Origin: Perkinsus chesapeaki ATCC PRA-425
Taxonomy: Eukaryota; Protista; Perkinsozoa
Assembly: GCA_013115145.1 (NCBI GenBank)
Contig: JAAPAO010000117.1
Span: 1-64,000 of the forward strand
Reading direction: 5' to 3'
Length of the DNA: 64,000 nucleotides
How positions within the stretch are numbered: position 1 is the stretch's first letter; each line of letters starts with the position of its first letter. The notes below the pieces were generated by a model that did no database searches, was not told where the DNA came from, and saw only the letters and a program-made list of their open reading frames with translations. The position numbers were made by a program, and so were the translations under genes. Positions 13,451-62,733 of the stretch are shown here, in pieces.

Positions 13451-15323
13451 ATGACAACTTCAACAACATCTAACCCGCCAATTAATGAATTATTCTATTC
13501 TTGCTTACCATTAATTGTACCCTATATTGGTGTTAGTGGATCATTAAGATCTTTGGGTATGGTATCTAAGGTAACTAGATGTATTGTATTAGAGCCAACA
13601 TCATGGTCACATGCTGAACTAGAGCCACCACTATCAACTAGTAAATGGTCAATGGAACGGTATAAGACAGTTGTACCTTTATTTACCTGTGTTAGTGACC
13701 TTGCAGTTCATGGTAGAGTACAGCCCCTGCCTAAGCTTATTATTACTTTATCAACTATACAAAGGTTACGATACCTTCAATTAATAGGGGTTACGGCGTC
13801 ACCTTTATATAATATCCTATCTCCATCTACTACTAATGCTATACCATTCTTAGAGTCATTAACTATAGGCTTTAGAGGTGATGAGGACCTAACCTATCCT
13901 ACAGGTGCTCGTCAGGGTAATACTATACATAGTAGGTTAAAGAGGGTAAGCTTTATCGATATAGACTTTGGTCCTAGTATTGTGGGATATGATACCTTCT
14001 CGAGTGATAATGGTATAGCTTTATGGTTGATACATTTCCTGGCTAGCTGCCCTGTACTTGAGGAACTAAAGGTCTTACAGGCACCAGCTAGGCGAAGGAT
14101 AGATAAGGTTAATGTAGATATCGAAGCATCTAGAGAGATCATACTTGGTAAAGGTATGCCTACATGGAATAATGGTGGACACCTTAAGAAGCTGCATCTT
14201 GGGTTATGGTCAGAGAGGGTTACACAAGGGTTGGTTCATAGGGTATCAGTAGCAGGGTCATTGGAAGGGATTGAGATACTATCAATGGGAGTATTGTCTA
14301 GTATTACTATGAAGATGTTATTGGATAGAGGGCTAGGGGGACATCTAGAGCAGGTGATGTCACAAAGATGGATGCCATCTATTCCAGGGCCTGATGGTGA
14401 TACTAGTATGAATAGGTTATTGGAGAGTAGTAGACATACACTTAAAGGCCTCAGTCTTGAATGTAAAGGTAGCTGCCCTGTACCGTGGGATATTATTATT
14501 GAATATATTATACGGTATCGTCCACCATTATTAAGGAAGGTGTACTTAACATTAATAATGGATGATAGTAATGGTGATATGGTAGCACCTGTACACAGTG
14601 CTCTATGGAGTGCTGCATTACGGTGCCATTATCCTAATATACCCTACTTTCGTCGTACTACCTATACTGTTATTATGGATGATATATGTAAGACTAATGT
14701 CCTTAGGCGTACCCTAGGCCTGTTGTATCCAGTAACATCAGCTAGGGAGCTGTTTGAAGAGGAGCAGGTAGTAGAGGGATGCCAGTGGATGCTGCTGCTG
14801 CTGCTGGGTTTAGGGTAGCGTTTAGGTCCTATGTGTTAAACCATATGACCATCCTGATAGACGTGCTAACCTCGATGATGATAATGAGTTCTTGGAGCTG
14901 TGGGATAATTTACCGATAGAATACCAAGGGCAATATTGGAATATATATAATAGTATATTTGGTATCTTTAGCTATAATAATAGAGGATCTCCATCGACTA
15001 TAACCCCTACCCCTAGGCCCAGACGGTCTAGGTATAGGTCAATAATATCACCGACACGCCATACTACAACAATGCCATTGGATCCTCGACACCGCCGCGG
15101 TGGTGATGATGCTATAGGGGCAGAGACAACAACACCAGCAGCAGGAGGTGTTAGCAGTAGATCAGTCGATACTATTGATGATGACGATGATGGTAGTAGT
15201 AGTGTTAGCAGTGATGCTAGTAATAGCTTGTTGGATATCCTTACCATAGAGGAGTTACTTAAGGAGGACATTACTCTTGGTACAGCTGCTAGTACTGGTG
15301 TTGTTGCATATTCTGGTGGATGA
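13451..15323 (+). CDS. F-box/LRR (RNI-like) protein
   Basis: N-terminal LPLIVPYI..LRSLGMVSK...SWSHAEL resembles an F-box; repeated LxxLxL segments (LRYLQL, LESLTI, LKRVSF, LEELKV, LKKLHL); one intron at about 14767-14824 joins the 14892-15323 frame. Confidence 0.55.
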
Positions 15324-15456
15324 TAGGTAGTAGTATCATGATCGTTGTTACTAAAGCATGCAGATAATATTAGTTTCGATAGGTTATTATTGTGTTAAGG
15401 TTATTATTAATAATAAAGGGAATAAGGATTGATTACTGTATTGTCTGTTTCTAATA

Positions 15457-17098
15457 ATGCAAGGGTTTACCCAAAGGAATAGGTCTGCATCATCATCAAC
15501 ATCAAGTAGCAGTAGTGGGTCAGTGTCGGTGATGAGTGATATAACCGCTGAGACATTGAAGACAGTGATGCCACAAGGGAGGGAGGAGGAAGTGCCGACG
15601 GGTGACAATAGGGAGGCTAAGCGGTGTAAAAGGAGAAGGAAGCAGGTAGTTGTGGTGGCAAGAGGATTACAAGGCAGCGGCAAAAGTAGTAATATAGGCA
15701 GTGATGGGGAAGGGAGGGGAGCTGCCAGGTATTAGGTACAGCTATGAGGGCAGCAGCAACACTATTGGGTGGAATATGGTTGAATCAAGATGAATTCCGT
15801 AGTCCTAGTAAAGGGGGTGGTAATGCTAAGGGTAAGTTCCTTGATAAGCTATCATGGTGTACACATTATGGAGATCCACAGTATATCATGGTTGATAGGA
15901 TTAATACACAATATCGGCATAGGTAGAAATAATGAAAGGGTTATTGTTGTTTTATAGGGCTGATGGTTGTTGCTGTTGTAGGTCTGATATATATAATGCT
16001 ATATATCCATGTAAGGGTGAGTATCCTGAGCTTATCTATATACAATGGGTACATCCTGATGATGAGAAAGAGGAGGAGGGCGGGGGTGGCGGTAAGGCTA
16101 ATGGTGGGGATATGTCACCATTCGACCCTATAAAGGGACGGAAGTACTTTGATGTATGTGCTAAGAATGTCCGTAATAGGCATGGCAAACATAGAGTAAT
16201 ACAGGGGGTGGTGTACAAGGGGGGTACAGTGATGTTATCTTAGTCTATTGATCGGTATGCTGATATTGACTTTATATTGGGTACAACAGCCTCGCAGGCG
16301 GAGCCTATTACTAAGGAAGAGATGTCACACTTCTCTGTAGCCAAGCTGTGTGGTATAGATGTTACATTGGATAGGAAGGGTATGGTTAGGAGGATATTGG
16401 AGATATTGGAAAGGGATGGGGACTTTAATGATGATGATATTGATAAAGCTATAGGTGATGTTGCTAAGATAGAGAAGACTATAGTACCTGTTGGCACTGG
16501 AGGAGGGAAAGGCGGTCAGAGACTAACAAGGCAGCAGCAGCAACAGCAGCAGGAGTATGATGAGAGACGTCATGATAGTGTTACAAGTGCTAATGGAAGC
16601 CTTGGAACGACAGGGGTGCCGTCTTTGGTGGGGCGTATGATGTTCCAATTAGAGTTAACTATGGATTCTCAGAGGTTATTGAGGAGAGCGGTAGGGAATG
16701 GTTGGGGGTATATGGCTGGTAAAGGGATAGTACCTAAAGATGAATTCCATGTTACATTACTATATGTTGATAATACTAATGCATTTGATGCAGCTAGTAT
16801 AGCATTAGTCAAAGATCTATGGCCTCGAATAGGGGATACCTTCTCCATCACGGTAGCCTTTGCTGTTTGCTCTGATTATGGTGTATGTGCATCACCGGTA
16901 CAATTCCTACAACCAACACCTTGTGGTAATATGTACCCTCATATAACATTAGGGGTGTCTCCAAATACATTGGCTAAGGAGAGTAATGAGATGTTAGCTG
17001 GTAAGCATCCTATGGAAGCACTAAGAGTATTGGAGTTACAGCTACCAGAAAACCAGACAGAGTTGGAGCTAAGGGCAGTGCTACGAGTATCCGAGTAA
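15457..17098 (+). CDS. Polynucleotide kinase plus 2H cyclic phosphodiesterase (Trl1-type RNA healing domains, no ligase domain)
   Basis: Spliced P-loop VVVARGLQGSGKST; WLNQDE; IMVDRINTQYRHR; two HxT motifs FHVTL and PHITLG..KESNEML. Confidence 0.8.
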
Positions 17099-17244
17099 CC
17101 TGTTATTATTATTATTATCAACTGTCCTCTACTTTGTGCTATATAAAATGTGTTGTTCTACTATTATTATGTTTCTTGGCCTCCTTATCTCAAGTCGTTG
17201 AGTTACAGTGCTACTATACCGATACCTCAGGTGTATCCTATAGT

Positions 17245-20200
17245 ATGGCCAGCCGTAAGAAGTATTATGTATTACTATTGGATGTAGGAAGGACAATGGC
17301 TGAGGAGGCTGCAACAGCAGCTACGGAGGGGCAGCAGACTGTTACTAAATTGGAGTTAGCATTGAAGGCGGCTAAGATGTTTGTAGTAGCAATGACCATA
17401 GGAGGGTGTATGAGGAGTGTAGATACAACAGAGGCTTATTCTTGGGGGTAAGAGTACCCAGGTAGCATTGGTACTAATGGGGAGTACTAGTACACGTAAT
17501 AGGCTAGAGAACAGTGGTTATCAGAATATAGATGTTATAAAGGACCTTACTATACCTGATATAGATATGGTAATAGTCCAGTGTTATTAGTGTTATGTCT
17601 AATCTTATACCTAGTTACATTGCCTGTCTAGTATTCATCCAGGAAGCCCCTATAGTAGTGATATTGTTGGTGGTCTTATAATAGCATTGGATATGATTAA
17701 GAGTGCTACTGAGAAGAGTAAGGCTAAGTAATAATAGACAACAGTAGAAGGGGTATAGGAGGTATCATACAAGGTCCCAGAGGACAGTATTAGTATTAAC
17801 CGATGGCTGCACACCTATAATGGGTAGTGGTGACCTACCCAGTGTCGTAGAACAGATGAACCTTCTTAATGTAGAGCCTATTATAACAACCTTTGGCAGT
17901 AGGACTCCCTGTCCTCTGCGTTTGTGGAATGCTGTTGTTATTGCTCATCAGCTCATCCTTTACCAGAAGTCCATACAGTATTTGAGGCATTTATCGCCCA
18001 GTCTCAGCAAGGGCAGTATCTAGAGGGGGCTACACTAATGGGGATATTAAAGCAGGTGCGGCGGTAGAGGGGATGGGTGGGCCCTGGGTGGTGGTGACTT
18101 GGGATGATGATGATGATGTCAGATAAAAAGTAAAGATACCCAACAGATATCAAAGTGTAGGGTAGATATGGAGATAACAAAGTATATGAAGATACCAGTA
18201 TGGTGTTATGTTAAAACTAGTAAGGTTACCTTACCAACACTTAAGAAGGAAAGTAGTAGGAGGAGGAGGGCACATACTACTACTACCACCCTTTTTGATG
18301 ATGGATTGAACTCAGGTGTTGATGGTGGTGCTCCTGTTAAAATGGACAGGGCTTATTTTACCGTAGATGACCCAGATGGAGAGGCTATACCAGCAGAGGA
18401 GAGTAACAATGCTAATCTGTTTGCCTAGTTGTTGAGACTGGTCTGTTAAGACCATACAGTATGGTCACCAAGAGTCCGCCGCTGTGTCATTATCGTCATC
18501 CCGTGATGTTCTGCTTAGTGTATCTCTACTATATTGTTGTTGTTAGGGCTAAAGGCTTATAAGTACGGTAGCAGCCAGTATGTACCATTTGAATCATATG
18601 ATGAAGCATCATTGAAATACCATTCGGATAAGTCCCTCACCATGCTTGGTTTTGCCAGGGCTAATTCTATACCTCAAGAGTAAAATGTTATTATTACTTG
18701 TTTGTATTAAATATTATAACAGCCTTATAGGCTTATGATTGGTGATACGGTAGAGTGTGTTGCAGCTGAGCCTAATAATATAGAGTCTGCGAAGGCTATG
18801 AGTAGCCTTATTAAAGCGATGGTAGAGTCAGGAGTGGTAAGTTAGTACTACTACCACAGCTGCTGCTGCTGTTGAGTAGTGTTATTGGCTTCTTCAGTAC
18901 ATGCTGGCACGGTATTGCTTTCGTAATGATATAAAACCTAAGTATGTATGTCTAGCCCCACATGTTGGTGATAGGTAGTAAGAGGTAGGGTTAGTTTGTG
19001 TTAATGGTAGTACTGGTGATGCTGTTTTAGTAAAACCTGCCTTTATATGAACCAATTACCATTTAGTGATGATGTACGGACTGATGGTATAATATTTCAG
19101 GATTTTAATACAGACTTATCAAACAAGGAGGTGCATGCTATAGATGTAATAGCTATAGGGAAGTTGGTTATAAGGAGAGGGGAGGGGAAGGGAGGAGGAG
19201 TTAGTCTTTGTTGGTTACCTAACAAAGAGGATATGGTCATCACAATGCTAATTCTCGCATGGCACACCACCCAGGGAGACACTGCACTGTAGTGTGTTCC
19301 TTGCCTACAGGCTATAGGATAGTGCCTATGGCCATAGGCGATAGCCTCTTTTGCTGGTGTGGTAGTGGTTATAGGTATTAGATTTTATTTGTTGTTGTCC
19401 TTTATTAAGCAACGGTCTCTCTTGATAGTCGTTGATGGATACTATGAATCTTGAGGATGATGGTGAGTCTCATGAGCTACTAAAGATGAAGGATATTCAT
19501 AACCCTACACTATTGAGGTTTTGGAGGACCGTAATACCCTATTATCACATGCTGCTATAGAAGGCTGGGAAGTTGTAGGTTATAGAGAGGGCCGATGATC
19601 CCGACGCACCAGTGGTAGGAGTAGACGAGGAAATAGATAGGTATTATGGTATAATGGCTTGTTGTTAGTATGGGTATGGGGGCTGGTTATAGGTATCTAC
19701 ATCCGGAAAGGGCTATAGAATGGCGGTTTATGAAGGATGTTAATGCATTAAAGGAAGTGTTCCCGTTAGTTAAAGTGCCAGTAGATAAGAAAAAGAAAAA
19801 GAAGTAAGAGGGGGGACTGCTGTAATAGGGATGTAAGTAGTTATATGGTATTGGTAAGGTACTGGAGGGGTTCACCGGATATAGAGACAGCTCAGGCTGC
19901 AGGGTATCAAAAACCTCCACCTGTTGACCCATCACATTTGGTACTATTATTATTAATTCATAGTGTTGATGTGGTGTTATATAGGTATTCGATTTCCCTG
20001 ATGAGGATGAAGGTGATGGTCTTAGTTCACCTGCTGTAGTGTCAGCCCAACATGCTGTACCATTATTCGGAGGAAAGCAGATGTATCCCCAAGTTAGGAT
20101 AGGATCTACAACACCAGTTAAGGACTTCACCACAGCAGTCTATGGTACGAGGCTATTTATCGAGTATTCACGGTAAACTGATGACACCACTAGTATCCAA

Positions 20201-37534: not shown

Positions 37535-40500
37535 TTAAAGAAGACCATGTGCACAACGTTTGGCGGGTCCATTACACTCATTCCCTTCACGATAGGTTTC
37601 ATCGTCATAATTGTTATCATCACAATTATCATTAGGAGAACGAAGCTTATGAGTTAGTCTAAACCACCAAAGGCTAACAGCTCCAGCACGACTAAGGCGA
37701 TGTACCATGCACATGAATGGGACCAGTACGAGAACTGTTAAAGCACTACCAAACATCCATTTAACAGCACTATCTGATGGGAGGTCTGAGTTATTGGTAA
37801 TAAAACCAGTAATAACAAATACAATACTAGCTAATAAAAGTGATAGAATAGTCATATCAATACGATCTTGAAGGCTGAGCCACATAAAGCCAGAACCGTG
37901 ACCAGTGCGGCAGCCTATCTCGAGGAAGAAACTCCAAACTGCCTCTCGACATTGCTTGTCAGTTATGCATCCGGCTGTATCTAGTGGGGTTAGACCTTCG
38001 TAATTGGTGATATTAGGTGAGCCATGACCTAAAGAAGATATGCATGTTATTATGGCGTGATTAAGAAGGGCAGACCTGATTTGTAGAGTATAGTACAGCA
38101 TGCTCTAATGAGATGGCTTGGACATTGTACTGTTGCCCAATGTAATGCAGTTCCTCCTTTATTATGGGGAAGTACCATATCGATACACCGTGATGGTCCT
38201 TTACATGTACTTGGACCACCAATAGGCCTCTCAGGTGCCCCACAAGATGCACGCCGCGGAGGGGTCGATGCCACTAAACATGCAGGTTGTTGGCAGTTAT
38301 GTACAGGCAACTTTACCTCGCTTATTCGTCTCCTCAGTCGTTATAGTAGGCATTGTAGATAACATAGGTATCGAGCTCCTAGGTGATACATACATTATCA
38401 TGATGACCATCCCCAAGCCCCCTACTTTGGTATAAGATCTCGTCTATGATGACTTGGTACATGTATTCGTCCTAATCGTCTTGCATGATGTGCCATTAAC
38501 TCTACACAGCTAAGGTTGCCTGCCATAATAGCCAGCTGGACCGGAGCCAAGGATCCAGTGCACACCATCCTCCCTGAGCAATAGATTCATTGTAATCATC
38601 ACTATAATGTCGCTACTGACCCATCATCTCAGTGGCCTGGTCTGTAGTTGTTGGCCTATCTGACGGTGTGCACTCATCGGCAGGATTGTCAAATGGGTTC
38701 ACGCCAGCCTCCATGAATACACGACATAGTCTAGTGCATCCAGCCCAGGCTGCTTGCCCAAAAAGTATAAGTTTTTTCTGTGGTGAGCACTCCCTGAGTA
38801 ATCTTCGTATGTGTCCTTCTCTCAATGGGCCAACACCTAGCTCATCGGCTATAATGCTCCATGGTAACACCTGGTGTACTGCATCTCTTAGCATCATATC
38901 ACCTACTAGCTCACCAGTGTTGGGGCACTGTCCCTCAAGACACGTCGATTGATTCGAGCTGATGTGTCTATTATACGGAGAATGTCTCTGTCAAATGCTA
39001 TGGACAACAGGCGTCTCAAACCACGGCATGAAGATGTCGGTCTGTCTGATGACCGTGGCCTCAAAGACTGGCGCAACACACTAGTGATTTGAGGGTACCT
39101 AAACAGCAGCAGCAGCATCGCCGTTCGGAGAGGGTGATTGGCGGCAATGTTATTACCCAGGGCAGATATCCCTCTTCTGGGACTGTAGCTCGGCTGCTGA
39201 GGTATCACGGTATTTATCAATAGCAACAACTAATCGACGATAGATGTCCCCACCAGCACGCATAGGAGAGGTCACTATCTCAAGACCTATTACGAGCAGC
39301 AGCAGCAGCGTGCTACTACTACCAACTATCAGGCTTGGCGGTACTACTCACCATAGACGCCCCGAGCTAGCTGGTCCTGTGCTTCATCCAGAGATTGGAC
39401 ATGAGCCTCCATAAGCTGTTTAACTCTAAGGAGGCCATGGTCTTCTAGTGTGACTGGTGTAGAGCAATGAGCAAGATGGGAAGCTCTTGATGATGTTAGC
39501 ATTAAAGGGTTATGTTGGGCGGCTGCGGCGGCGGTGGTGACAGGCACACCACCACAGAATGCTGCTGCAGACCTCGGCCTTACTGCACTGTAGCACTGGG
39601 ACAGTACCACAGCGCAGGAATAAAGGTCCATGGCCTGATAGATGGTCAGTTGATGAAGACGAACAAACATGCAGTCGTTCACAAGATTACCAGCTCAGAC
39701 ATCGGCGGCGCACCACGCTGGTGAGCGTCCATTGGACTAGGTAGAACCGCATCAGGTGGAGATGGGAAGGGGGATGCTGCTGCTGCTGGCTGGGCAGTTG
39801 AGATGATACCCATTACTGAGTTACCAAAGCTGGACTGTTGGGCCCATCTCTGGATCTATAGTCCGAGTGTCTTGTATCTATGAAGTACTATCCTACTTGC
39901 TCCGGTGATGCCCAACCAACAATCTTCAATAGTGATGACCAGTCTGGTACGGGCCCTACACCAGAAGACTGCTGCTGCTGTTGTTGCTGCAAGTGATCAT
40001 CATCCTTAGCGGGCCCGCCTTCTAAAGGAGGTCGAGGCGATGGTCTATTACCATCTGGGGAGGTTGTTGTCGTGTTTTCTAATTAATACAAATGGTGTCG
40101 TTGGATGGGGCGGCGGTGGCGGCAGTTACCCTGTTCAGTAGCAGGATGCATGCTCTCTACAGTAGCCGCAGCCCAATCCATCAAGGCTACCGTTCTACTA
40201 TATTGACTCGGAGGAGCGGCGGCATCATCATCATCATCATCATCATCGAAGATAACACTCCTGCCATCTACCGTTGTATTACTGTTAGTCCCCTTCATAA
40301 TGACTATACTCCTTGGGTTGATATTGTGGTGTATAACACCAACATCATGAGCAGCCTCCACCTAAGTAGGTAACATGCAGCCGAAGCAGTGGTCTAGATG
40401 ATGATGATGATGATGAAGAGGAGAAGTAGTAGCAGGTACTACTGCTGACAGGAGGGCTGCCATGAGACCCTGTGCCTCCCCTAAAGAGTATGGTTGCCTT

Positions 40501-43500
40501 CTACCTTCTATAATATCCTACAGCCAACAGTCTCCTAGAATATGTCACTGGAAACTGGAATGCTCCTACCTCAAGCTCCTGCTCTAGAGTTGGGCCCTCG
40601 AACATGTCCATAACAGAGTACCGCAGTCCAGAGTCGGTACTGCCACAATGTATCCATCGAGGGAACGGTGGTGGAGCAGCAGCAGCAGAACGGGTGTCTC
40701 GAGCCCCCTCTGGTGTATTAGAACCGCCGCCGCCCTCGAGGCGGCTCAGGTCACTGCTGGTCACGATGTTCTCACCTATAGTAAATCCAATAACAGCAGC
40801 AGTTGCTGCTGCGGTTGGTGGTTATGGTTACTTAGATATTTGTGTACTTTACACTCATTCATTATCATTGATGTCTCCCCATCAGTCTGTGGCCTGTAGA
40901 ACACCTTAACAGCTACTAGTTGGACAACAACAACTGAAGCAGCAGCAGCATCTGTGGGGATAACTTCATTGACACCGTCTCGGGGGCCATTAAGAGATGC
41001 CACGCTGGAGACCATGGACTAAACCAGTAGTGGCTCCACTAACGCCTCCACCTGTTTAGTTACCTGCTGCTTTTCGTTAGCCTTTGAGCGTGCTGATGAT
41101 GATGGTATGATCAAAGGCGTCGATGATGATGATGCAAGTGATGACCTTCTACCAGGCTGATGATGTTGTTGTCCTCCTCCACCCCCGCCACTGCTGAGTC
41201 TGTCTGGTGTATCCTCTAGACGACACTTGAATATAACAGATCTAGTCCCAGACCATAGGACATCTAATATGGTATAGACCCTTCCTATCCTTAGGCCTCT
41301 AACACCTGGACCTCCACCATCATACCCATCAAGGAGTATACTAGCATCCCCTAAAACAAAAACAGTGCATCCTCAGCAATTGGAGTTGTGGCTCCAGGTC
41401 GTGTATGAATCACTACTGCCGCCGGTCTCTATAAAAGCCTCGATAGCCCTGTCTAGGACACTCTCCACATCTCTCAATGCTGTTGGCAGTAGCCTATGAT
41501 CCCTTAGAAAATGATGGACCTATTATCATAGTGAGTAGCCTCTTCAGTGTCGTCGTCGTCGTCGTCTATTCAACTCACTTCGCTCTGAACCACAGTTTGA
41601 TCCAACTCCACAGCTGTGATGCATGCCAATGCTCTAACTGTGGCATCCTGTACCATCTCCCATACAACTTCACCGATGATGTCATCCAGTGCCTATCTAT
41701 AACAATAGAGCACCCTACTAGAGCACCCACACCTACGCTCCACGGGCAGGCCACACCGCCGCTTTCCATGATAGCAGCAGCCCTACGGTCCGTCTTAGGC
41801 ACCAGATCCACACCGTGAGTTGCTGGAATTCTGAGTACAGCTGTAGCGAGCTGAATGGGTGTTGTTGTTATGAGGTTTGTTACTGTGAGAGAGGCTTACC
41901 TTAAGTGAGCTGGTTATCTTGGACGTGAACTGCGGTGTGCTGCGGTGCATTTTGGGTACATTGTTCAATAATAGTTTTTGACAGTATCCAAGGCCTCGGA
42001 TGATAGGATCCCTATTCAGTAGGGTAGCTCTAGTACGCCATCTGTACAGACCGCAGCAGGTTCGATCGTTGTTGCCTATCTGGCACTGGTGTGGCAGTGG
42101 TATACCTAGCTTCCAGGGCATGATCAATGGTCCTTAGGTCGGTAATGCATCTGGCTATTGCAGCGGCTGGTGATGAGAATAGCTTTGCCAGAGTCCACAA
42201 TACCTATGGGGAGTGGTATACTGCTGTCGTTCTAGCGAACATTGGATACATTCAGACTTTCCGTCCGTTTGGTATCATTATAGATATGTTGATAATAGTT
42301 ATAAACCTCACGGGACCACATACGTTTGGCTGTCTTGTAAAAATCTTGCTTATCACCACCAGCGTATTTGAGTATATCAGAGTTAAGTGACTCTTTATAA
42401 GGGTTTAGTGCTTTGGTTAGCAACCCTTCTTCACTCTCCACTTGCCATAGCACCGATGCTTCTATTATCCGCCCTTGTGGAAGTGATACCGCCACATCTA
42501 GTTTAACCTCCCCTTGACTGTACCGTACAGCCTCCTCCAAGGTCATGCTTAATCCATTACTGTTGCCCAGTACCTATAATAATATGCAACAGCAGCAGCA
42601 GCCGCAACCTTAAGTGGTGACCAATGGTACCTTCCGACCGGCTATTATCTCTTTAGGAGACCAACGGAGCTTAGGGAAACTGCTGACCCACTGGCGAAAG
42701 AACTCATATTCAGTCATAGCCCTGTCCCTCTGTGCAGCCCCGCCAGATGACACCCTAGAGGTAAGCTTTGATGGTGACTGTGCCCTCCCCATTGACAGTA
42801 TCCAATGCTTGTAGGTTGTGCTCCATTGGGCCTCGACAGAGTGTCTAGAGTCCAGGCATGGTGCCTTACGCAGCACATGCTCACTCAGAAGGCCCTCGGC
42901 CAGCAGTCTTGACAACTAAAACATAACATAATTATAAAGGAAGAACCCTAAGTAGTACTACTTGTCTATATACATGTGGTCCATCATACCCTACCAGCTT
43001 CCTTCCGACATAGTCCCACTTTCCCATACCAGTAATAGAGCTCAGGGTTGTGTTAGGATGTAACCCACATTTGAGTTCTAGGAAAGATACTCCATGGACG
43101 AGCTTTGCCGTTGCAGCTTTTTGAGTGATCCTGTGAGGCTCTTTAGGATAGGTGGCGGATGCTGCCTGGATGTTAAGGATGTTCAAAATGATTCTTTGGA
43201 GCTCAGCCGTGAACACTCTGGCGGTCACGTCACTAGGCTTCTCTAGGTAAATCTGATCTACTTATCAATGTACCCTTAGGAAACCCTGTCTGACTTTCTC
43301 AAAGACGTCAATGTCCCCCCAGTACTTGAATGCCAGGTAACGGTAGCTGCCTACTGGGGCAGGCGTATCTTTCCCCATTGTTATTAGCTCTACAACCTCC
43401 TTCAAAGCTGGGGAGTATCTTATCAGATTAGCTTAACCCGGTTTAGCTGTTGAGATGTACTGTAGGTTTACGTCCTGGCATCTAATGGATGTGTTAACCT

Positions 43501-43766
43501 AGAGTCCCCTCTAAGGCCAGTATCCTCTTCCTTAATACTTTCAACATACATTCTACTGGCCATACTAGTCTAAAACAATGTCTAACGCTGGATAGTGGAT
43601 GATAACCTACCCTCTTCATCTGTCCAAAGGCATCCCTGCTGGCTAAGGATGCCAGCTCCTCTTGTTTACTATCGACGCTCCTAGAACTAAGTGGCTGCTG
43701 TTGGGTGTCACAAGGACCACCACCTGCGCGACTGCAGCCAGAGCTGGTCCAGTGCAGAGGAGGCAT
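37535..43766 (-). CDS. Multidomain protein: Pol-beta-type nucleotidyltransferase, pseudokinase, ankyrin repeats, 2 TM helices
   Basis: About 25 GT-AG introns keep one frame. NTase: VGSY..WGDIDVFE, FLELKCG, KLRWSPKEIIAGRK, VKLDV. Kinase-like: YTILDVLWSGTRSVIFKC, VAVK, IHHNINP, DWA, GWASPEQ, DLYSCAV. ANK: LAPVQLAIMAGNLSCVELM, GGTALHWA, GLTPLDTA. TMs: ILSLLLASIVFVITGFI and WMFGSALTVLVLVPFMCMV. Confidence 0.75.
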
Positions 43767-44092: not shown

Positions 44093-47000
44093 ATGGCCAC
44101 TGCTGCCGCCACGGCTTTACCTGGGGGTAGTACAACACTTACAGTACACTCTACAATAGGTGGAGGAGGAGGGCCATCACCAACAGCAGGGATGCATATA
44201 CCTGGCGGTGGTATTAAAAGTGTGATGTCGACATTATCACAATCTCCAACAGCAACTACATCTAAAGCTGATCTAGAGCTTAGAAAGATTATTGACGCTG
44301 GTAATGTAACCTACTGGGAATCCTGCTAGCATGAGCCTAAGATTCGTTCACTCATAGGTGTATTACGATTTAATAACTCCGCTAAGGATGGTATACAATA
44401 TTTAATATCAGCTGGTGTATTAGATGATGATCCAGCTGAGATTGCAGAGTTCCTGGCCAAACAGGAGAATTTAGACAAGCATGTTATCGGAGAATATCTT
44501 GTAATAAGGTTAATGGTGTTAAAAGGTGATGGAATGATATCAGGGCAAGGATAATGAATTCAACGTTGCAGTATTGAATCGTTTCGCTCAACTATTCGAC
44601 TATCGTGGACTACCGCCAGATGAGGCCCTCAGGCTATTCATGTGCAGGTGAGTCTGAAGTATCTAGTCTGAAATATAGCCTTTGTTTAGATTTGCCATGC
44701 CTGGTGAGGCACAACAGGTGTATCGTATCTTAGAACGTTTCTCAACGTATTACGCAGCAACATCCACTTCACTTAATCGTGACCAAGTTCATGTAGGCCT
44801 CTCTACACCAAGTTCCTCTATTACTACTAGATACTAGCATATGCTCTTATTATGCTTAATGTTGATGCTCATAACCCCCAAGTTACTGATAAAATGACAA
44901 GGGATCAGTTTATTAAGAATACCATGCCTGAAGTTAGCCCAGGGTGCACTGCAGAGGAGCTTGGACAAATGTGATGGATATTATATAGTATATTGTTATT
45001 AACCAACCTCATATAGGTATGATAGAATAGTTGCCAAGGAGTTCCGACCAGATACTACACCACAGGAACTGATGTAATAAAGGGAAGGCGGGGTTGGTGA
45101 TGGTGGTGGTGGACGCTGTTGGGTATAGGTATGTGAGGCTGGCAAAGAACCCTCAGTATTCGGCAGATGAGAAAAATGTAGCAGCAACGCCTGAAGAGAT
45201 ACAGCGGATGAAAGTTGGTGATAACTTTCTCAAGTTTGGCAGACGTGGCCGTCCGCATGCCCGGCGGGTTTTCCTATCGGAGGTAGTACTAGGGTTAACG
45301 GTGGGGTAGGGGGGTCATGGTTTCTCAGGATGAGACCAGGATATGTTGGGTTGAGCCTACAGACTCCCGGGGAGGGCGTCTAGGATCGTTATTGAACCAC
45401 GATGCCGCAATGCCGCGCAGTAGGCCTACTACGGCTGGAGGCAGACCCTCCACAGCACCGGCCACTACTACCAATGGTGGTGGAGGCTCTGTGGGAGGGA
45501 AGAGTCCAGCTGCTCATAGCGAGTTAATGGTCTCGGGGAAGGCGATGCCAATAGCAGGTAGGGGATATAGCAGGGTCTAGCAGGAAGAAGTATGGTCATG
45601 CAGGAGCGGGAGATCTGGCCACCTCGGGAGCATCGGCAACGCACCATCTACGTAACATAAGGCTTGATGAAGTTACAGGGCTATGTGTTGGAACATCGGG
45701 ATCTAGTGTATTCCGAAAGCAATGGGTACCCGAGGCCTTGGAGGATAGATGCTTCTCTATAATAACTGAGAAGAGATCTCTTGATTTACAGGTGATCATC
45801 GTCATCATGTTATCATCTACCATATGTGTCTACCCCTGACATTGTTACCTTCCCCTCCATTAGGCCCCAGCAGCGGTGGATATGCGTATGTGGTTGCGGT
45901 TCTTCCATTATGTACTGTCTGAAAGGGAAGCTAAGATACGGGCAGCAGCAGACCCTGTTAAGGAAGCCCAGGAAATGCAGCGTGCTGGGGCTAAGAGACT
46001 TAGGATATGGAAGGAAGAGATACTACCCAATTGGGCCAAACATTGGACCACTGGTATGCTGCTGGTGTTGAGGGGGGTAGAGAGTAAGGCTACGAGGTCA
46101 TCAGGTGCACAGGCTGGCTCGGGGACACAGGGTAGGAACCCTGATGGTTTCCGCAGTAGAGGGTTACGTATGTTGGAGAATGCCACACATAGGATAATAG
46201 TTAGTGACAAGCAGCCCAATGAGGCTTTAACATTTCAAATGTTCTATTCTGGTGGATTTGCCTTGGATAGAGGGCAGAGGCTTGAGACGGCCCGGACACC
46301 GACGTTGGTCAATCTATGGCTTGAAGGTAGTAATAGGGTAATCTGCGGTGGTGGGGGATGTACCAGCGTTAGGTCTGCCACCTGCATTAAGGTGTAAGAT
46401 ATGGCCAATAGCTATAGGAAACAACCTGAGGATTAATTCTGACACCTTTGCTACCTTGACCCGGAAAGTGCATCGAGCCGAGAGGAAGAATTCGTGGAGT
46501 AAATCACAACAGACTTATCTCACACGATTCAAAAACGACCTAGAGTCCGACTTGGTGCAGACTTTTATTGGAAAGGTGGTGGAGTGGCTGCATACCTTTG
46601 GCACTAGAGAGCAGCTGGAAGGGTTCCTGGATGCTGCTACTGAAGATGGGTATAGGAAACTAAGGGCACATGAGAGCATTATGGATGACCAAGGCATGAT
46701 GAGGGCTAAGTCTAGTGGGTCGGATGATGACGATGATGATGATGAGGGGTACTTCTGTGAATGTGATAGCGATGACGATATCTATGATAATGATGATGTT
46801 GAAGCGCATCATAGGTCACATAGGTGTGATGATTGTGGTGTAGCAGTGGAGGCCATACCGAGCCCTGCTCATGGATTGGCAACACCTAACACAATAAGAT
46901 CGAGGGCACCATCAGATCCTTCTGGGGCACCACCAACCCATGCTTCTAATGATGCTGCATCTTTGGGGTCTAGAGGGGGCAATTCTACGGTCATTTGTGA

Positions 47001-48053
47001 GAGATGCCGTAAGATAGCTATAAAGAAGAAGTTGAATACCAGAGGGACGTATAACCAGCCATGGGAGACGGCATGGATTGGTGGAGGGAAGTCTGATACT
47101 TCTGATGAGGTAATGACCTGCTCTTACTGGTCTTGGACGGACATATCTCTCTCCTCAGGATGCCCTCATACGGAAGGGCTTATTGATGCTGCTGTCAGAT
47201 CTCATCAAAGCCTTCATCGTCTATAGGTCGGATGTTGGTAACGTTGTTCATCCCTTCATTATTGTTATTATTACATTTTGTTAGGTTATGTTCCTGGTAT
47301 GATATCCCTTTGTACTACTGTATTGGTGAATGTAGGCCCTCGTCCGTTGGGACAGGCCTTCTGTACATTTGCTAATTTAATGCATCAATACTACTTCTTG
47401 GATGTGTATATGGTTAAGAGGAGGAACATGAAGATGCGTTTTGATTTTCTTGAGGTAGTACACTACCTTCCTCCTCCTCCGCTCCCCCTTACTTATCCAT
47501 GCGCACCCCCCATCCAGGTCCTACTGCGCGAGCGTGCACCATTCCTAGAGAAGCACTTCTCTATATTACAGCTGACTCCAGAGGTCTACTTCCTACCGTG
47601 GTTAACTAGTGTCTTCACTAGATGTATGCCGTTCCATGCAGTGTGTCGAATGTGGTAAGTGTTCCTGAGCATGTTCGTGGAGCACCATTAGTCACTTAGG
47701 GATGGATTCCTTCTCCTTGGCGAGGCCCACGTCTTCACGTGCGCACTGGCATTACTGCGATATCACGAGCATGCTTTAATGACATCTGGTTTTGGAGGAT
47801 GTTTAGAGATCCTTACCTCTCCACCAGATGAGAGACTGTTTGATGAGAATAAGTTCTTCGACTATTATATGAAGCTTCCAGAGACTGTGGTGAGTGGCAG
47901 TGGCATTAGTATGCACACACTTCATCGAACTTACTCATTGCTACTTTGTTGATGCATTTTATTTAGGTACCTAATGAACGGCTAGGAGCTTGGATGGCTG
48001 CCCAAAGATTGGGAGAGGAGAAGACTTCTCTATTTGAGCTTCTATTTTCTTAA
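44093..48053 (+). CDS. Sec7 (Arf-GEF), PH and TBC (Rab-GAP-like) fusion protein
   Basis: Sec7: FNNSAKDGIQYL, LDKHVIGEYL, FAMPGEAQQVYRILERF, LAYALIMLNVDAHNP. PH: FLKFGRRGRPHARRVFL. TBC: GLPPALRCKIW, GYVPGM, YFLPWLTSVF, CRMWD; stop at 48053. Confidence 0.88.
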
Positions 48054-48377
48054 TAGTGCTTGTCATCATGGTGATGATACTGCTGCTGCTATGACTGCCT
48101 TAGTACTACTACTGCATTTTCTCTTTTATTATATGTCTCATTACTATTTGCCTGTATGCTATAATCTGACTGTTGATGATGATGATGATGAATATGATGA
48201 TAATAACCCTGTTGTGGTTGTTACTATCCTCCCACTGTGTCCTCCCTTTAACTTTGAATATTTGCAAGTAGCCCCCATCACCATACAATATTATTACTCC
48301 TATACCAATCCACTAGTCTTAAGTTAGTCTATTACAAACCGGGAGTGTTAGAGGAGTTTATTGACCTTGTTGACAGT

Positions 48378-50843
48378 ATGCTGGTGATTGCCCTTCTTGG
48401 ATTTGTTGTTGTCTGTGTATCACAGACGGGACCACACGAAACGGCTACTGTAGAGGCGGCCATTGAAGAGGCAATGTCCGCTGCTGATGTGAGAGGGACA
48501 GAGCAAGCCGAAAGGATCTCCGCCGAAGTCAGCCTCATAGACATACTCTACCAGAACATTCTGTACATAGATACTCAATATCACCCTTCCGCTATCCGAG
48601 AGGGTACTCGCAGACCCCCGCACCAACGTAACTCGGTGTGAGTACGCTGGTGAACCTGCGGGCCTGTACAAGCCTGGCTTCTGGAGGCAGCATATACTTA
48701 TCTGGAGCACTCGATATAGCTGGGCAAGCCACTGCTGCTACTGTTACCGCGGCTGCTGTGGGTCGGCTATAGGGACTGCTATAGGTTACAGAAGCTGAGA
48801 GTATTGTGTTCCTACGTATGCTGCTACGAATAGCACCAGACATCGAAGAGGTTATCAAAGACTGTGTCCAAGGCCTTATTGTTGTCATGCTACTATCAAT
48901 GGATGCTGTTGAAGTAGTGGTCGAGTAGACTAAGTGGTAGACTAACATGCTACCTGAGCAGGTGCAGACGGGCGACTTGAGGGTGGTGCAACATCTCTAT
49001 ACCATCACTGAAAGCCTAATAGATGACTATGGTCATCTTATTAATAACTCTGATTGGACTGAAGGGCTTCGGATGGAGAAGTGCTGCTGCTTTGTGTGCT
49101 GCTGTCCCCAGCCTGATCATGGCAGGTTCTGGCGGCCTGAGTGGGACCGTACCAAGTTGAACTCTGATGATCCGAACCAGCTGTTCTGGGTTGAACCATT
49201 TAAACACGAGTATCGAATGCTACTCGACTTGACTACTAATGATTGTGCACATTCGGACTTGAAGATCTTTGTGTAAGTTTGCCCCGACGAAATCAGCTAC
49301 CACCACGGGCAGCATAGATATGACCCATCCCCGTGGGAGGCAATGCTCAACCCAGGCAGCCTGAGTTGCGGTAAAAATTCTCAATGGGGCTTTGAAGCTG
49401 TATGGCACAAGTACTTCAAGAACGGCGCGTGCAGAACGGCGGTGCCCACAGAAGCAGACCTATTCTTCGTACCTCTCTACCCGATGTGTGCTCGTGTTAT
49501 CTCAAACACCACAAGCCATTTCGATACGGAAATGCGGTATGTGGTGATAAAACACCTAACATTCATAGACAAGTAGGGCCATGTTAAGTCGGAGAGAAGT
49601 TGTCTTCAGTCAGGCGTGGAGGTGCTGATCACATATTTGTGTTTGTGGATGATGCTGAGATATTCTTCCCATCCTGGCGTAGCTTCATTCCTAACTCAAT
49701 TATACTAACCCCAGATGCTGTACACTACGCTACTGTCTCTAGTCCCTGTTGTTAACTCTCTTCATAGATAAGGCCCGGGCATGCGGACTGGCAGTACCCT
49801 ATTATCGGACCACAACGCCGCGAGAAGAACATGTTCAACGTCTGGCGTGACGTTGTTGTCCCTAGTTACACTGACTATTTCCGTCGCCAAGTCATACGCA
49901 TCTTATCATATTGCTCTCGACCATCTTGTCAGGCACTGCTCCGCTTTGATCGTCCCTTAGAGGAGCGCCCCTTTCTGGTAACATTTGTCGGCCGTCATGG
50001 AGGTTCGCATGAGCTTTACAAAAGCAATGAAGTCAGAAGGCTTATATTTGAGCATCTTCGTAACGCCAGCCATGTACGGTGCACTCTTCCTCGAGCTTTT
50101 CACTACATGCTATTATTATCAGTCTGCTGTTGCCGAGAATGTGGAGGATGCCTTTGATCTGAAGGGGCAGAGTATATTCTGTCTTGTCCCTCATGGTACA
50201 AGTGTATGGACGCATCACCTTATTGAGGCTGTTATGGTCGGTTGTGTACCGGTCATCCTCTCTGGTGAGCGCATAAGCACTTAGCTCATAATATAATGTA
50301 TATGAGTGATTACTACAAAGCGTATTTTGTCTTGACGGCTTCACGCGCAAGAGGGTAATTCCTTAAAAGTATCATTTCGAAGTCTCATCTTTGCGCGGTA
50401 GCCATCTCTCTATGCCAAACCCTCGCTCCGCTCCATTTAAGTCCAAGGCGGTCCCCTCTAACTTGCCCCCTATCCACTTCAGATAGTCTAGTATTGCCTT
50501 TTGGTCACGTCATTCCTTGGCGAGAGATATCAATAAGGTGGCCACAGCTCGAAGTTGATTATGATAACTTTTATCGTTATTTATGGTCACAGAGGAACCA
50601 TCCAGAGGGATGGAGGAAGCTCCTAACTATGAAGGAGAAGGTGTCTTCATTACTTCGACCTGTTATGCATTTCATCACTGCTTTCAGTTGAGGAAGTACC
50701 GTTGTTGGCTGGACTACCATAGTGATGTCCCTAACTGTTCACCGTATCATGCTGTGATGCCTATCCTAGAGTCTAAAAGGACGCTTTTAGATCTTAGTTT
50801 GGCCTCTTCGGATGCATACTATACCATGGATCACATTCAATAG
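48378..50843 (+). CDS. Exostosin-family (GT47) glycosyltransferase
   Basis: Signal/anchor LVIALLGFVVVCVS; RTAVPTEADLFFVPLY; FCLVPHGTSVWTHHLIEAVMVGCVPVIL; LPFGHVIPW. Confidence 0.88.
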
Positions 50844-58731: not shown

Positions 58732-59154
58732 ATGCTCGTCAACGCCCTTGCTCTTCCGGTAATTGCCTTCCTTGGTTGCCTGGCCTACTTCCCGCCTTAC
58801 GAGTACTATTGCTCTGAGGAAGCAACTTTCGAAGGAGCCTTGTGGGCCTTACGTTTTCCTCGTGGCGGTGAGCCTCGTTTGGATAATACTATGAGCATAT
58901 TCCACATTAAGGATTCTAAGCAAGTGTTCACGTGGGGTATTCCAATCACGAACCGCACCATTCGTGAGCTGGTCTTCGTCCAAGTCGATACCCGTTCGTC
59001 AAATTTCACCGACTTCGCTGATAAATACGGCCTTACTCCTGAGCTGTGGTCTCTTCTCCTCCTCGATAACGAACATAACAGTGTGACTATCGTCCCAAAC
59101 AGTACCAGCAAGACGTATGAATTGTTTGCTAAATTCTGTCGTACGAGGCTTTGA
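58732..59154 (+). CDS. Small secreted-protein family, copy 2 (intact, 140 aa, intronless)
   Basis: Signal peptide MLVNALALPVIAFLGCLA; FPP..YCSEEAT; WALRFPR; TMSIFH; VFTWGIP; FVQVDT; C-terminal Cys. Confidence 0.85.
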   Translation: MLVNALALPVIAFLGCLAYFPPYEYYCSEEATFEGALWALRFPRGGEPRLDNTMSIFHIKDSKQVFTWGIPITNRTIRELVFVQVDTRSSNFTDFADKYGLTPELWSLLLLDNEHNSVTIVPNSTSKTYELFAKFCRTRL

Positions 59155-59565: not shown

Positions 59566-62298
59566 TAAGATTCCCACGACACTTACTCCCTAACGATTTA
59601 CTGAGTTACTGATGAAAAACACGCCGCTGAAAGCTGTGGCACTGCCACAGTGGCAGCATCCGAGCCCTCTTGCACGCAAGCGCATTACGGAGGTGGGCAT
59701 TACGGGCACTATCTCACCCGTCCGCCGCAGAGTGTACGACCCTGCGCCTACAGTTTATTCCCCTCCGGTGGGTTGACGACATGGGTATGAAGGGGCTGAC
59801 GTGAGAGTCCAATCATTGGACTCTCATTGGACATCATTGGACCATTGGACTCCAATGGTCTCGCTGAGTGAACACTCTTCTTTAAAAGAACGTTCTGCTC
59901 CCTCCGCATATCGAGATCTCGGGTACCTCCTAAGGCTGTACTTGACTCTTCTGCTCGCCCAATAGAATACAACTCACGTTTTCTAGTAGACTACGAGCTC
60001 TAACGAGACCATTCAAGAAGTGCTCCGGTTTTCACTAAGAAAAAACTCGGATCAGCGGCGCAGGAGATCACACTGTGGGGCGTTAGTACCCCGGCTGCAA
60101 GGAAGCATGCTGCACTCGGGGCATCTTGTTTCGCTGAAAATTTGAAAGGTTTCGTATCGGCTCCTGACACTGAGCTTGCAGGTCACCAAGCCATTCAACA
60201 GTAGGGGATTACCAATATGACATTCAACCGAAAAGTTTTCACGGTCCTCCGGATCCCTATTGAGAGTTTCTCATGTGACTGTTTCTTCAGAAATACCTCG
60301 AGTTATTCAATGTTCGTCGACACCTTAGCTGAAAAATGTGGAAGTATATCAATACATAGGATGTATGATCACTGTAGGATCAATACATGCTCACTAGGCG
60401 TTTGCTCAGGCAGCGCTTGAGCTCTCCCATGCTTAGACTTCTATGACGGTCAGCGTCAGACGGTGCCTTTTCAAGGTCTTGTTGCCCAGGGTGATTGTTC
60501 CCCCGCATTTTAATTATTTCATGCCTCATCGCCAAATGTCTGGGCAATGCTGCATACCCGTGATATGTGAAGATAGCTGAGGTGCAGCTTTAGATGAGTA
60601 GTGGATGTGCGCTTCAGAGTTGTCCATCTGGCCTGCATGCAAACCCTGAAACTCTAATTATGAGGTTTGTCCCTCACCGTGAACATGAGAGTCTTTTCTT
60701 ACATACTGGCGATGAAGCTCAGTGATAAGCTCTAGCGAAATCCCTAGAAACTCAAGCCCAATTCTGGGACGATCTTCGACTTCGAACCACGTCAACATCG
60801 GTATAAAAAGTCACTGTCATGTCACACGACTCGTGTGAGCCTCAACTTGCTCCTTGAACGTAGAACAGGAGCCGTGACTATTCAAGTGAGGGTATACAAT
60901 CATGATCCGCAACGGCACCCGGCTGTAATATGCCGAGCATTTACTGTGCTTACCGCAGAACAAGCTCATGGTTTACATTAGGGTCCTACATAGATTTGTA
61001 TTAGGTACACCGGAATTGGAGTCGATCAGGTACTCCAAGTTGGACAAAAAGAGTGAAACAGTCGACAACGATTGAAAGGTCAAGCTTAGGAAACGTTAAC
61101 TTCGGACGAGGGGGTGTTTAAGGACCTCTGATTCCAGACGAATGAGAACAATTTCAAACTTGAAGAATTCAACTGGACGCACACATCCAAACTCAAGACG
61201 AATGTTGTTTTCGACTCGAATGTGATATATTCAATGTACGGAACCTTTCCGTTGGTAACACGGAGATGCGGTGCCTAGGTGAGTATGGCAAAGAGAATTT
61301 GTAATGGAGCTATATGAAACACATCTTTTAGTTTCGGGTCCGCATCTACTGAAAAAGGTCGCAGTGCGGTATCTGACGCCAGCCGCTTGCACTAGTATGA
61401 AAGTCCAGCTAGTCGCGAATCCAACACAGTACAATGTATCTCAGTGCTTATAGCTATGATCTTATTAATATTAAGGCTGTGGCGTTCTCATGTCAGCATC
61501 AAACTTCACAGTATTAGCAGTCCCGTGCGGGAACATCGAAAGTGGAAGATTAGCTATATCTGATGTGACCGATCTGTTGCTGATAATTAGCTATGACACA
61601 TTGTAGAAGCTCTATGATCATGTATTTTCCCCGCCGCTTGGTGATTCATCATGACTATACGCTCTAGGCGAGCAATCATCCTTCCAGTAGAAGCAGTGTT
61701 TAGTTGGAAGGAGGCAAAGCCTCGTTTCATGGCTCCGTCCGCGTTCCGCAGAGATTCGTGCCGTAACACGTGCCCTGCCAACTTCCTAAGGGAAAGTAAA
61801 AGAATCAAGAGGGCGAAAGCCGGGCTTTATAGCAAAGCGGCGTAGCTTGTGTTACCTACCGAGCTGAAGCCTTAAAAACCGGCTCTCTTGCGGCAAAAAT
61901 GTGCAGAACGATTGAGTAAAGGCTCACAAGAAAAACTCGACTGTCACACTTGCATGTCACCATGTTCGCCCAAGAGGTAGCATTCTTTTCATGCTAGTGT
62001 ACCTTGTTGTATAAAGACACTGGGTACTAGAGCTAGCATCGCTGACCATATCTGGCGGGTGCAAACTGAATATGATCAGAGTGCCATAGCCCAACATAGG
62101 CCGCTTGGTCGACTTACTTCGCCATGAATCGTGGTTTCATCGTCGCCTCCGGGCGTGACACGGAAAAGGTCACTAAGCAGTGCCGTTGAGCAGAAGAAGT
62201 ACTTATCAGAGCTTTTAAGCTACAAATTCTCTCGCCCCCGTGCTTCCCGTTTCTGATTCACGTGTATTTCTTCTTTGGCACTTACTTCTAGTTATCCA

Positions 62299-62733
62299 AT
62301 GGTTGTCAACACCTTAGTGCTCTCGTTCATTTCCCTCATTGGCTGTCAGGCGGTCTTCCCGCCCAATGAGCAATACTGTTCTAAAGAAGCAACCTCTGCG
62401 GGAGCCATGTGGGCTTTGAAATTCCCTCGTGACTCCGAGCCGCCGCTGAAGGATACGATGAGCATATTCCACGTCGCGGGTTCCCAACAAGTGTTCACAT
62501 GGGGTATTCCAATGCAGAAGAACACCTCTGGTGACAAGACCTTCGTCCAGGTTGATACTTCTTCGGAGCACTTCACGAAGTTCGCTAAAGAATATGGTCT
62601 TGCTGCCGACCTGTGGGAGCAAATCCCGTTCGACACCAAGAGCAACAGTATGACGATTCAGCCAAACAGTTCTAGCAAGCAGTTTAAACTGCAGCCAGAC
62701 TTTTGTTTCAAACGGACTCGAAGAGCCTTTTGA
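62299..62733 (+). CDS. Small secreted-protein family, copy 3 (intact, more diverged)
   Basis: MVVNTLVLSFISLIGCQA-VFPPNEQYCSKEAT..WALKFPR..TMSIFH..VFTWGIP..FVQVDT..FC. Confidence 0.85.
   Translation: MVVNTLVLSFISLIGCQAVFPPNEQYCSKEATSAGAMWALKFPRDSEPPLKDTMSIFHVAGSQQVFTWGIPMQKNTSGDKTFVQVDTSSEHFTKFAKEYGLAADLWEQIPFDTKSNSMTIQPNSSSKQFKLQPDFCFKRTRRAF

Follow-up and report, generated by a model that had tools for sequence, protein, structure and literature searches.

A conserved L544/Mg662-family nucleotidyltransferase gene in Perkinsus chesapeaki, probably extended by pseudokinase, ankyrin-like and membrane-anchor parts

This work concerns one gene of the clam parasite Perkinsus chesapeaki, lying on the minus strand of contig JAAPAO010000117.1 within a 64-kb window (the whole stretch of DNA that was analysed, with the positions of the gene given on the minus-strand read), which encodes a nucleotidyltransferase (NTase) of the Pol-beta type. 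Sequence profiles assign the enzyme, as a divergent member, to the L544/Mg662 family, whose members had hitherto seemed to be confined to viruses, and the locus is a working, intron-rich Perkinsus gene. Taking all lines of evidence together, we consider it probable that this working gene carries a captured NTase at the head of a longer protein, followed by a pseudokinase, ankyrin-like repeats and a membrane hairpin. A first-pass annotation of the same DNA, made from the sequence alone, had described much of this anatomy and was essentially right about it.

The family membership rests on a chain of searches, starting from the 108 amino acids (aa) encoded by exon 6. A HMMER scan of this exon against 1.84 billion representative proteins returned one true relative, the 90% identical protein P0001 (Pmar_PMAR012173 from P. 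marinus ATCC 50983), the four other matches being repeat-protein artefacts. A search with P0001 led to one further relative, P0006 (BLASTP between the two, 1e-10), both proteins carrying the motifs PVGS..GDID, KLRWS, VKLD/VKID and KxAKRMWS, and P0006 has 32 relatives of its own, resulting in a family alignment of 34 sequences. The profile built from the 33 non-Perkinsus sequences scores P0001 at 123 bits (E 7e-37 at Z=1000) and our spliced P. chesapeaki model at 136 bits, and the family profile finds, in the PDB, Mimivirus L544 (4AMQ) and Megavirus Mg662 (4AMS) at E 1.4e-12. The fold comparison points to the same enzymes: using the AlphaFold model of P0001, which is of medium confidence (predicted local distance difference test, pLDDT, of 72.7), Foldseek matched 4XUL (1e-6; by its title, Mg662 crystallised with GTP), 4AMS (4e-6) and 4AMQ (1e-5) with TM-scores of 0.35-0.51, and no other PDB entry fell below E 0.1.

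The active site is complete in the Perkinsus enzyme. Its three catalytic aspartates correspond to the invariant columns D18, D20 and D235 of P0001 in the 34-sequence alignment, where K78, G80, W199, K289, K292 and R293 are likewise invariant, and all 10 of the family's 10 invariant columns are retained. The conserved blocks comprise the Gly-Ser pair, the DxD motif, the third Asp, the Lys and Gly of the DFKAG-type motif, the LRW of KLRWS and the KxxKRxWS motif, the last of which is probably a triphosphate-binding helix. The segment PVGSYRY...GDIDV (43357-43304) places the hG[GS] motif ahead of the DxD on the next strand, as the family requires. Between the second and third motif blocks lies a Perkinsus-specific insertion of ~115 aa, which is split by a 46-nucleotide (nt) intron (42961-42916) and is of low confidence in the AlphaFold model (pLDDT <50 at P0001 residues 137-169). 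The proposal in the first-pass annotation of a Pol-beta-type NTase with a full catalytic triad is therefore confirmed by the family alignment and by the profile and fold matches, and the positions that it gave for the Gly-Ser pair (43351-43346), the Asp-Ile-Asp (43315-43307) and the Asp of Lys-Leu-Asp (given as about 42500, located at 42498-42496) were right when checked by hand.

The closest other public sequence is the P. marinus ATCC 50983 scaffold GG671097.1 (L001), which aligns collinearly with the window, at 66-77% nucleotide identity, over the stretch reaching from the NTase exons as far as an acyl-CoA dehydrogenase gene; tblastn of P0001 correspondingly matches the NTase exons in the window. 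Both species share the ATG and exon 1, and their first introns agree in position and phase. Over 489 aligned codons, the proportion of nonsynonymous differences between the two species (pN) is 0.104 and that of synonymous differences (pS), which is saturated, is 0.755, showing that the NTase exons are under strong purifying selection. The public P. marinus gene model, Pmar_PMAR012173 (413 aa; L001:3037-4895), is short at both ends: it starts without the conserved start codon and exons 1-2, and its 3' end follows a 1-nt indel and lies within a P. chesapeaki intron, 56 nt before a scaffold gap of 100 N. Further downstream, towards the scaffold gap, conservation in P. marinus extends to the donor of exon 8, to the TCAG acceptor that follows and to the initial ~17 nt of exon 9, although the intervening intron is not conserved; with silent sites saturated between the two species, this counts in favour of the fusion discussed below.

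Outside Perkinsus, the relatives of this enzyme are viral. Among the 18 matches of the P0001 model in BFVD at E<=1e-3, all belong to giant viruses or virophages apart from three for which the tables consulted gave no name, and they include proteins of Sylvanvirus, Tupanvirus and Klosneuvirus, a Pithovirus 'nucleotidyl transferase', the 'V21 virophage-like protein' of Fadolivirus, and virophage proteins from Zamilon, Yellowstone Lake virophage 5, Qinghai Lake virophage and mavirus. In a 2013 survey, the virophage protein V21/OLV5 had been listed without detectable domains or other homologs (PMC3671162). We inspected the genomic contexts of four relatives, located on a giant-virus-like contig of 1.45 Mb, on a second giant-virus-like contig and on two virophage-like contigs, and in none of these four contexts does a kinase or ankyrin protein adjoin the NTase. 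P0006 itself sits on a virophage-like contig beside Sputnik-type capsid genes. On the virophage-like contigs (L002:283-1365 and L006:3950-5377), the NTase lies a few genes upstream of V18-19 and of the Sputnik-type major capsid genes. Additionally, six of the 34 family members, five of them being P0018, P0021, P0027, P0031 and P0032, carry a PLA2-like domain (PF08398), which suggests a virion-associated or membrane-acting role in some viruses. In an unrooted maximum-likelihood tree, the two Perkinsus sequences fall among the viral ones and have a long branch, a placement that is unsure due to long-branch effects. The most likely origin of the NTase is acquisition from a giant virus or a virophage prior to the divergence of P. 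chesapeaki from P. marinus.

With such relatives, a long branch and an unusual composition, the locus might also be read as what is left of a giant-virus or virophage element that integrated and is now decaying. We regard this as very improbable, and the explanation as largely refuted, considering that host-type introns occur throughout, that the synteny with the acyl-CoA dehydrogenase gene has been kept in two species, that the invariant residues are all retained under the strong constraint seen in pN/pS, and that neither the list of open reading frames (ORFs) nor the public annotation of the adjoining part of the contig shows viral genes nearby.

At the level of the genome, the region appears on the minus strand as a mosaic of short open frames, from which a stop-free read-through can be built from the ATG at 43766 to the TAA at 37537-37535 with a hand-curated splice model (Table 1). 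Its 23 introns, a number close to the "about 25" GT-AG introns of the earlier description, measure 41-66 nt in 21 cases and 160 and 198 nt in the remaining two; the donors are GTA (17), GTG (3) and GTC (3), and 21 of the 23 acceptors are YAG. Exons 1-8 are backed by the P. marinus ortholog; for the later exons, the prediction relies on open frames, splice signals and domain logic. The curated model replaced one obtained by automatic dynamic programming with a self-trained splice matrix; the automatic gene models were unstable in the 3' half and over-split it into micro-exons and introns of 21-26 nt, so the exon boundaries 3' of 41350 are predictions, several of them ambiguous. Two local choices were discarded during curation: a route through 40517-40440 with a 13-nt micro-exon and a 24-nt intron, in place of which one 160-nt intron gives normal spacing from the hinge to the catalytic loop, and the donor GTAAAG at 40852, dropped in favour of GTAACC at 40831. 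The 160-nt intron contains a (CAT)6 run at 40420-40400. Codon-usage scores did not discriminate at the locus, because codon bias is weak here.

Downstream of the NTase module, aa 617-1140 resemble a protein kinase interrupted by long low-complexity inserts, which include Asp8, Gln7 and Gly6 codon runs (40250-40227, 40000-39975 and 41190-41170, respectively). Using a kinase hidden Markov model (HMM) that we built from 86 natural viral kinases collected by the HRDLKPEN motif, this region scores 6.7 bits, which is low in absolute terms, while none of 3000 within-exon shuffles exceeded 3.8; exons 12, 13, 14 and 18 match profile positions 5-28, 36-64, 82-100 and 191-209, in this order, with p values of 0.03, 0.002, 0.014 and 0.025. 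The beta3 Lys (VAVK), the alpha-C Glu, the DFG Asp (as DWA), the SPE motif and the DxxSxG helix appear to be kept. The glycine loop reads WSGTRS, HRD has become HHN and LKPEN has become INPRS (with Ser in place of the catalytic-loop Asn). With the Gly-rich loop, the catalytic Asp and two further residues of the catalytic loop (Lys and Asn) lost, we predict a pseudokinase, as the earlier reading of this region had it. The kinase homology itself is modestly supported by these sequence matches; the domain is hard to detect because its inserts are large, and no match came from a word-based search with a piece of exon 12. If it is correct, the three residues kept (beta3 Lys, alpha-C Glu and DFG Asp) mean that the domain may bind nucleotide.

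After the kinase-like region, a 33-residue ankyrin HMM, for which 197 natural viral ANK repeats were used, scores aa 1184-1480 at 13.6 bits, again low in absolute terms, a value reached by none of 3000 shuffles (the top shuffle scored 7.6). HMMER delimits units at aa 1284-1302 and 1399-1412 only, those at aa 1334-1362 and 1439-1467 fitting the consensus by eye. The third unit is split by a 47-nt intron (38075-38029), and the junction ILYKS/G/HGSPNITNYEGLTPL across this intron is a good fit to the repeat consensus. These ankyrin-like repeats are modestly supported by the sequence, as are the two C-terminal transmembrane (TM) helices predicted from hydropathy. The latter lie 9 residues apart, followed by a basic stretch and then by an acidic, Cys-rich tail of 55 aa, and the topology would be that of a hairpin leaving both ends cytosolic. 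The TM region also gives a weak match to the Pfam membrane-protein family DUF2254 (E 7e-4), which is the sole Pfam match after the kinase region, and no KEN domain was seen there. The repeat HMM and the hydropathy profile thus recover the ankyrin-like repeats and the two hydrophobic helices of the first description, whose remarks that KEN is missing and that the domain order is unlike that of RNase L are also upheld, the order being NTase, kinase-like, ankyrin-like and TM.

Whether these parts belong to one protein depends on the 549 nt between exons 8 and 12 (41899-41351), where three helix-like exons are flanked by good splice sites. The reading frame likely continues through these three short helical exons into the kinase-like, ankyrin-like and TM parts. 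Exons 9-11 are a predicted helical linker, probably the remainder of the C-terminal helical domain of the family: the family profile match stops at about position 306 of 448, the profile runs ~140 positions past the last matched residue, and the tail of exon 7 together with exons 8-11 provides 158 aa, which is about the fitting length. The proposed NTase-kinase junction, GGC GGC A (41417) / GG GAT (41350), is real and phase-compatible, with a 66-nt intron between. Just upstream of exon 12 (kinase beta1-beta2) there is an in-frame TGA (41375-41373) and exon 12 has no in-frame ATG; therefore it must splice to an upstream exon. When a linking path was required to use 38-70 nt GT[AG]..[CT]AG introns in the correct phase, it occurred in 40 of 1000 shuffles and in 3 of 128 natural stretches of the window; with short-intron paths arising in only ~3-4% of controls, one ORF is compatible with the data and a chance origin is mildly unlikely, which does not amount to proof. 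On this genomic sequence, we consider the fusion of NTase and kinase in one protein likely. Of the one-protein claim made in the first-pass annotation, the stop-free, phase-compatible frame and the rarity of short-intron paths by chance stand, the single ORF being something that we still infer.

Several results weigh against the interpretation given here. Concerning the family assignment, P0001 has no Pfam match at E<=10 and hence none to PF21655 (L544_NTransf); no more than 11 of the 34 sequences score against this model at E<=0.01, so the Perkinsus protein belongs to the wider family without being covered by the curated model. As the tree is unrooted, the virus-to-host direction is not proven. 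Concerning the downstream domains, besides the low absolute scores of both HMMs, Pfam searches of 20 stop-free locus pieces and a PDB sequence search of two kinase pieces found no kinase, and Pfam found no ankyrin on the locus pieces. Concerning the fusion, exons 9-11 do not match the C-terminal part of the family profile significantly (p 0.1), a linking path is found in 47% of shuffles once any GT..AG pair is allowed, the 100-N gap of the P. marinus scaffold falls exactly where the kinase part should follow, and no NTase+kinase protein was present in the representative-protein search, nor such an architecture among the NTase relatives. Finally, Perkinsus mRNAs undergo spliced-leader trans-splicing (PMC3101222), which makes closely packed separate genes possible.

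Several of these last points sustain an arrangement in two adjacent genes, in which the NTase would end after exon 8 or 11, a separate trans-spliced gene would encode the kinase-like, ankyrin and TM parts, and the seeming continuity would be a by-product of plentiful GT/AG sites. It would also agree with the 33 of 33 viral relatives that are stand-alone or carry only a PLA2-like domain, and with the NTase-only public model of P. marinus. The latter model, however, stops inside an intron beside the scaffold gap and after an indel, and is therefore uninformative on the fusion; moreover, exon 12 is unable to start translation, the first in-frame Met past it (aa 714) lies behind the Gly-loop strands, a start codon in exons 9-10 would put the two genes <150 nt apart, and the strict short-intron paths are scarce in the controls. 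Two genes are consequently, in our judgement, a doubtful alternative, though one with some weight.

If the single protein is accepted, the following mechanism can be proposed. The NTase would be the only catalytic module, using a nucleoside triphosphate and two metal ions (its nearest solved relative having been crystallised with GTP) to move a nucleoside monophosphate to a hydroxyl acceptor at the membrane surface, candidate acceptors being an RNA 3' end, a protein or a second nucleotide. The pseudokinase and the ankyrin repeats would serve as a regulatory or docking scaffold, and the two-helix hairpin would anchor the protein at the membrane, with the whole of it on the cytosolic face. Our literature searches found no paper on the enzyme activity of L544/Mg662 (4AMQ).

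A different function, and the one put forward in the first-pass annotation, is that the NTase makes a diffusible second messenger, sensed by the ankyrin repeats and pseudokinase, with the TM helices as effector; kinship with OAS, cGAS and CD-NTases and a role in innate immunity or stress signalling had been suggested. We find this proposal improbable. The catalytic triad is indeed complete, Mg662 was crystallised with GTP, and the more confident P0006 model (pLDDT 90.3) has, after Mg662/L544, structural neighbours at ranks 4-50 that are almost all cGAS, CdnC/E/G and NF90/NF45 DZF proteins, together with FAM46. Nevertheless, these neighbours of cGAS/CD-NTase type are weak (E 0.01-0.07, TM-scores 0.15-0.25), the P0001 model matches cGAS/CD-NTase structures at E 0.28-0.67 only, Pfam gives no Mab-21, OAS1_C or SMODS match on P0001 and P0006, and no cyclase model of the cyclic-oligonucleotide-based antiphage signalling system (CBASS) set in PADLOC matches P0001, P0006, P0010, P0030 or two window exons at E<=1. 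From the models, the L544 family would fall in the same broad architectural class (NTase core plus helical bundle), a class that has no bearing on the product. Regarding the remaining parts, there is no KEN or other nuclease, nothing shows the TM helices to do more than anchor, the ankyrin-like repeats are highly degenerate with nothing linking them to ligand binding, and the domain order is the reverse of that in RNase L. The suggested kinship is hence not borne out by any Pfam or PADLOC profile, the enzyme belonging to the L544/Mg662 family, and the immune synthase-sensor-effector role, drawn by analogy, is unsupported. To a self-contained nucleotide-signalling or antiviral module, built from a domesticated viral NTase that is cGAS/CD-NTase-like in structure and wired to a nucleotide-binding pseudokinase, ankyrin repeats and hairpin, we give slightly less credence still; were it true, it would be a eukaryotic one-protein counterpart of the synthase-sensor-effector systems, in an alveolate parasite.

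Table 1. Features of the P. chesapeaki NTase locus (window positions; boundaries after exon 8 are predicted)
Feature	Position	Strand	Basis or detail
Predicted coding region	37535..43766	(-)	24 exons, 23 GT-AG introns, ~1591 aa; ATG 43766-43764, TAA 37537-37535
Exons 1-8, L544/Mg662-type NTase module, aa 1-506	41900..43766	(-)	Family HMM, P. marinus ortholog
Exons 1-4	43766-43611, 43569-43472, 43418-43295, 43252-42962	(-)	
Exons 5-8	42915-42631, 42573-42250, 42203-42106, 42041-41900	(-)	
Gly-Ser of hG[GS] motif, in PVGSYRY, aa 106-112	43346..43351	(-)	G and S near-invariant in family
Asp-Ile-Asp, two metal-binding carboxylates, aa 120-122	43307..43315	(-)	Columns invariant in 34 sequences
FLELKCG (family motif DFKAG, invariant Lys and Gly)	43064..43084	(-)	Family alignment
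Perkinsus-specific insertion of ~115 aa, between FLELKCG and KLRWS	42673..43063	(-)	HMM alignment gaps
Third catalytic Asp, in VKLDV, aa 341-345	42496..42498	(-)	Equals invariant D235 of P0001
KTAKRMWS (family motif KxxKRxWS, invariant K, K and R)	42313..42336	(-)	Family alignment
Exons 9-11, predicted helical linker, aa 507-617	41850-41737, 41692-41579, 41519-41417	(-)	Frames, splice sites
Intron between NTase and kinase-like parts, 66 nt, GTAGTG...TTTTAG, phase 1	41351..41416	(-)	Splice signals
Exons 12-18, divergent protein-kinase-like domain (putative), aa 617-1140, long low-complexity inserts	39352..41350	(-)	Own kinase HMM
Kinase landmarks, N-terminal half	WSGTRS loop within 41261-41238; VAVK Lys 40919-40902; alpha-C Glu 40862-40845; hinge 40614-40594	(-)	
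Kinase landmarks, C-terminal half	HHN-INPRS 40337-40308; DWA 40184-40167; SPE 39917-39897; DLYSCAVV 39631-39605	(-)	
About 4 degenerate ankyrin-like repeats, aa ~1280-1467	37910..38765	(-)	Own repeat HMM
Ankyrin-like units	38765-38688, 38556-38470, 38157-38012, 37996-37910	(-)	
TM helix 1 (predicted), aa 1486-1506	37793..37855	(-)	Kyte-Doolittle 19-residue window, up to 2.5
TM helix 2 (predicted), aa 1516-1536	37703..37765	(-)	Hydropathy peak

In the surroundings of the locus, the gene on the opposite strand (44093-50843, plus) is publicly annotated as one 1065-aa protein with Sec7 and Exostosin_GT47 domains, an unusual pair that may reflect a merged gene model; its first exon is apparently the ORF at 44093, ~327 nt from the ATG of the NTase gene. 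Elsewhere in the window, a 636-aa ORF with a long Glu/Lys-rich tandem repeat of EEAERKEKE type (7601-9511, minus strand) coincides with an extreme local GC / AT skew (-0.25 / -0.36) at 8000-10000, and a strong positive GC skew (+0.26 to +0.29) is sustained for 6 kb at 14000-20000. Two tandem paralogous single-exon genes with hydrophobic N-termini (58732-59154 and 62275-62733, plus strand; 140 and 144-152 aa) match no Pfam family, and Rfam and tRNA scans of the window gave no matches. Just past the window end, the contig carries a gene for a 1717-aa retroelement polyprotein with RT_RNaseH and rve domains (64866-69154).

As for its significance, the L544/Mg662 enzymes have solved structures and an obscure function, and a conserved, intron-bearing cellular copy under purifying selection makes the enzyme's role open to study in a tractable host. 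The locus also adds a clear instance of gene capture linking an alveolate parasite with giant viruses or virophages, and it allowed the truncated public gene model of P. marinus to be corrected. Should the fusion be real, the protein would additionally bring built-in hints about the partners of the enzyme, namely a pseudokinase, a repeat scaffold and the membrane.

The comparison with known systems helps to place this protein. Kinase-like domains joined to ankyrin repeats are known in RIPK4 and ANKK1, where the kinase precedes the repeats, and in ILK, an ankyrin-pseudokinase, with the ankyrin repeats acting as a docking scaffold; this likeness is drawn from general knowledge, with no homology established, and the Perkinsus protein differs in its low-complexity inserts, in the loss of the catalytic Asp, and in the NTase and the TM hairpin. 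RNase L shares ankyrin-type repeats and a kinase-like domain without catalytic residues, whereas in Perkinsus the order is reversed (kinase then ankyrin), KEN is missing, an NTase and a membrane anchor are added, and the repeats are too degenerate for ligand-binding residues to be compared. With cGAS, OAS and the CD-NTases, the enzyme has in common the Pol-beta core, three carboxylates and a putative C-terminal helical bundle; it differs in that none of them shows a sequence-profile match to it and the structural match is non-significant, with low TM-scores. Compared with Mimivirus L544, Megavirus Mg662 and the virophage proteins, the Perkinsus copy is encoded by a cellular eukaryote, has at least 7 spliceosomal introns in its NTase part, bears an extra N-terminal extension of 80 aa besides the large insertion, and probably continues into kinase-like, ankyrin-like and TM parts, seen in 0 of the 33 viral relatives. 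Despite these differences, it is with this viral family that it shares the catalytic triad, the DFKAG-type Lys and Gly and the LRW and KxxKRxWS motifs, and probably also the layout of an NTase core followed by a helical domain.

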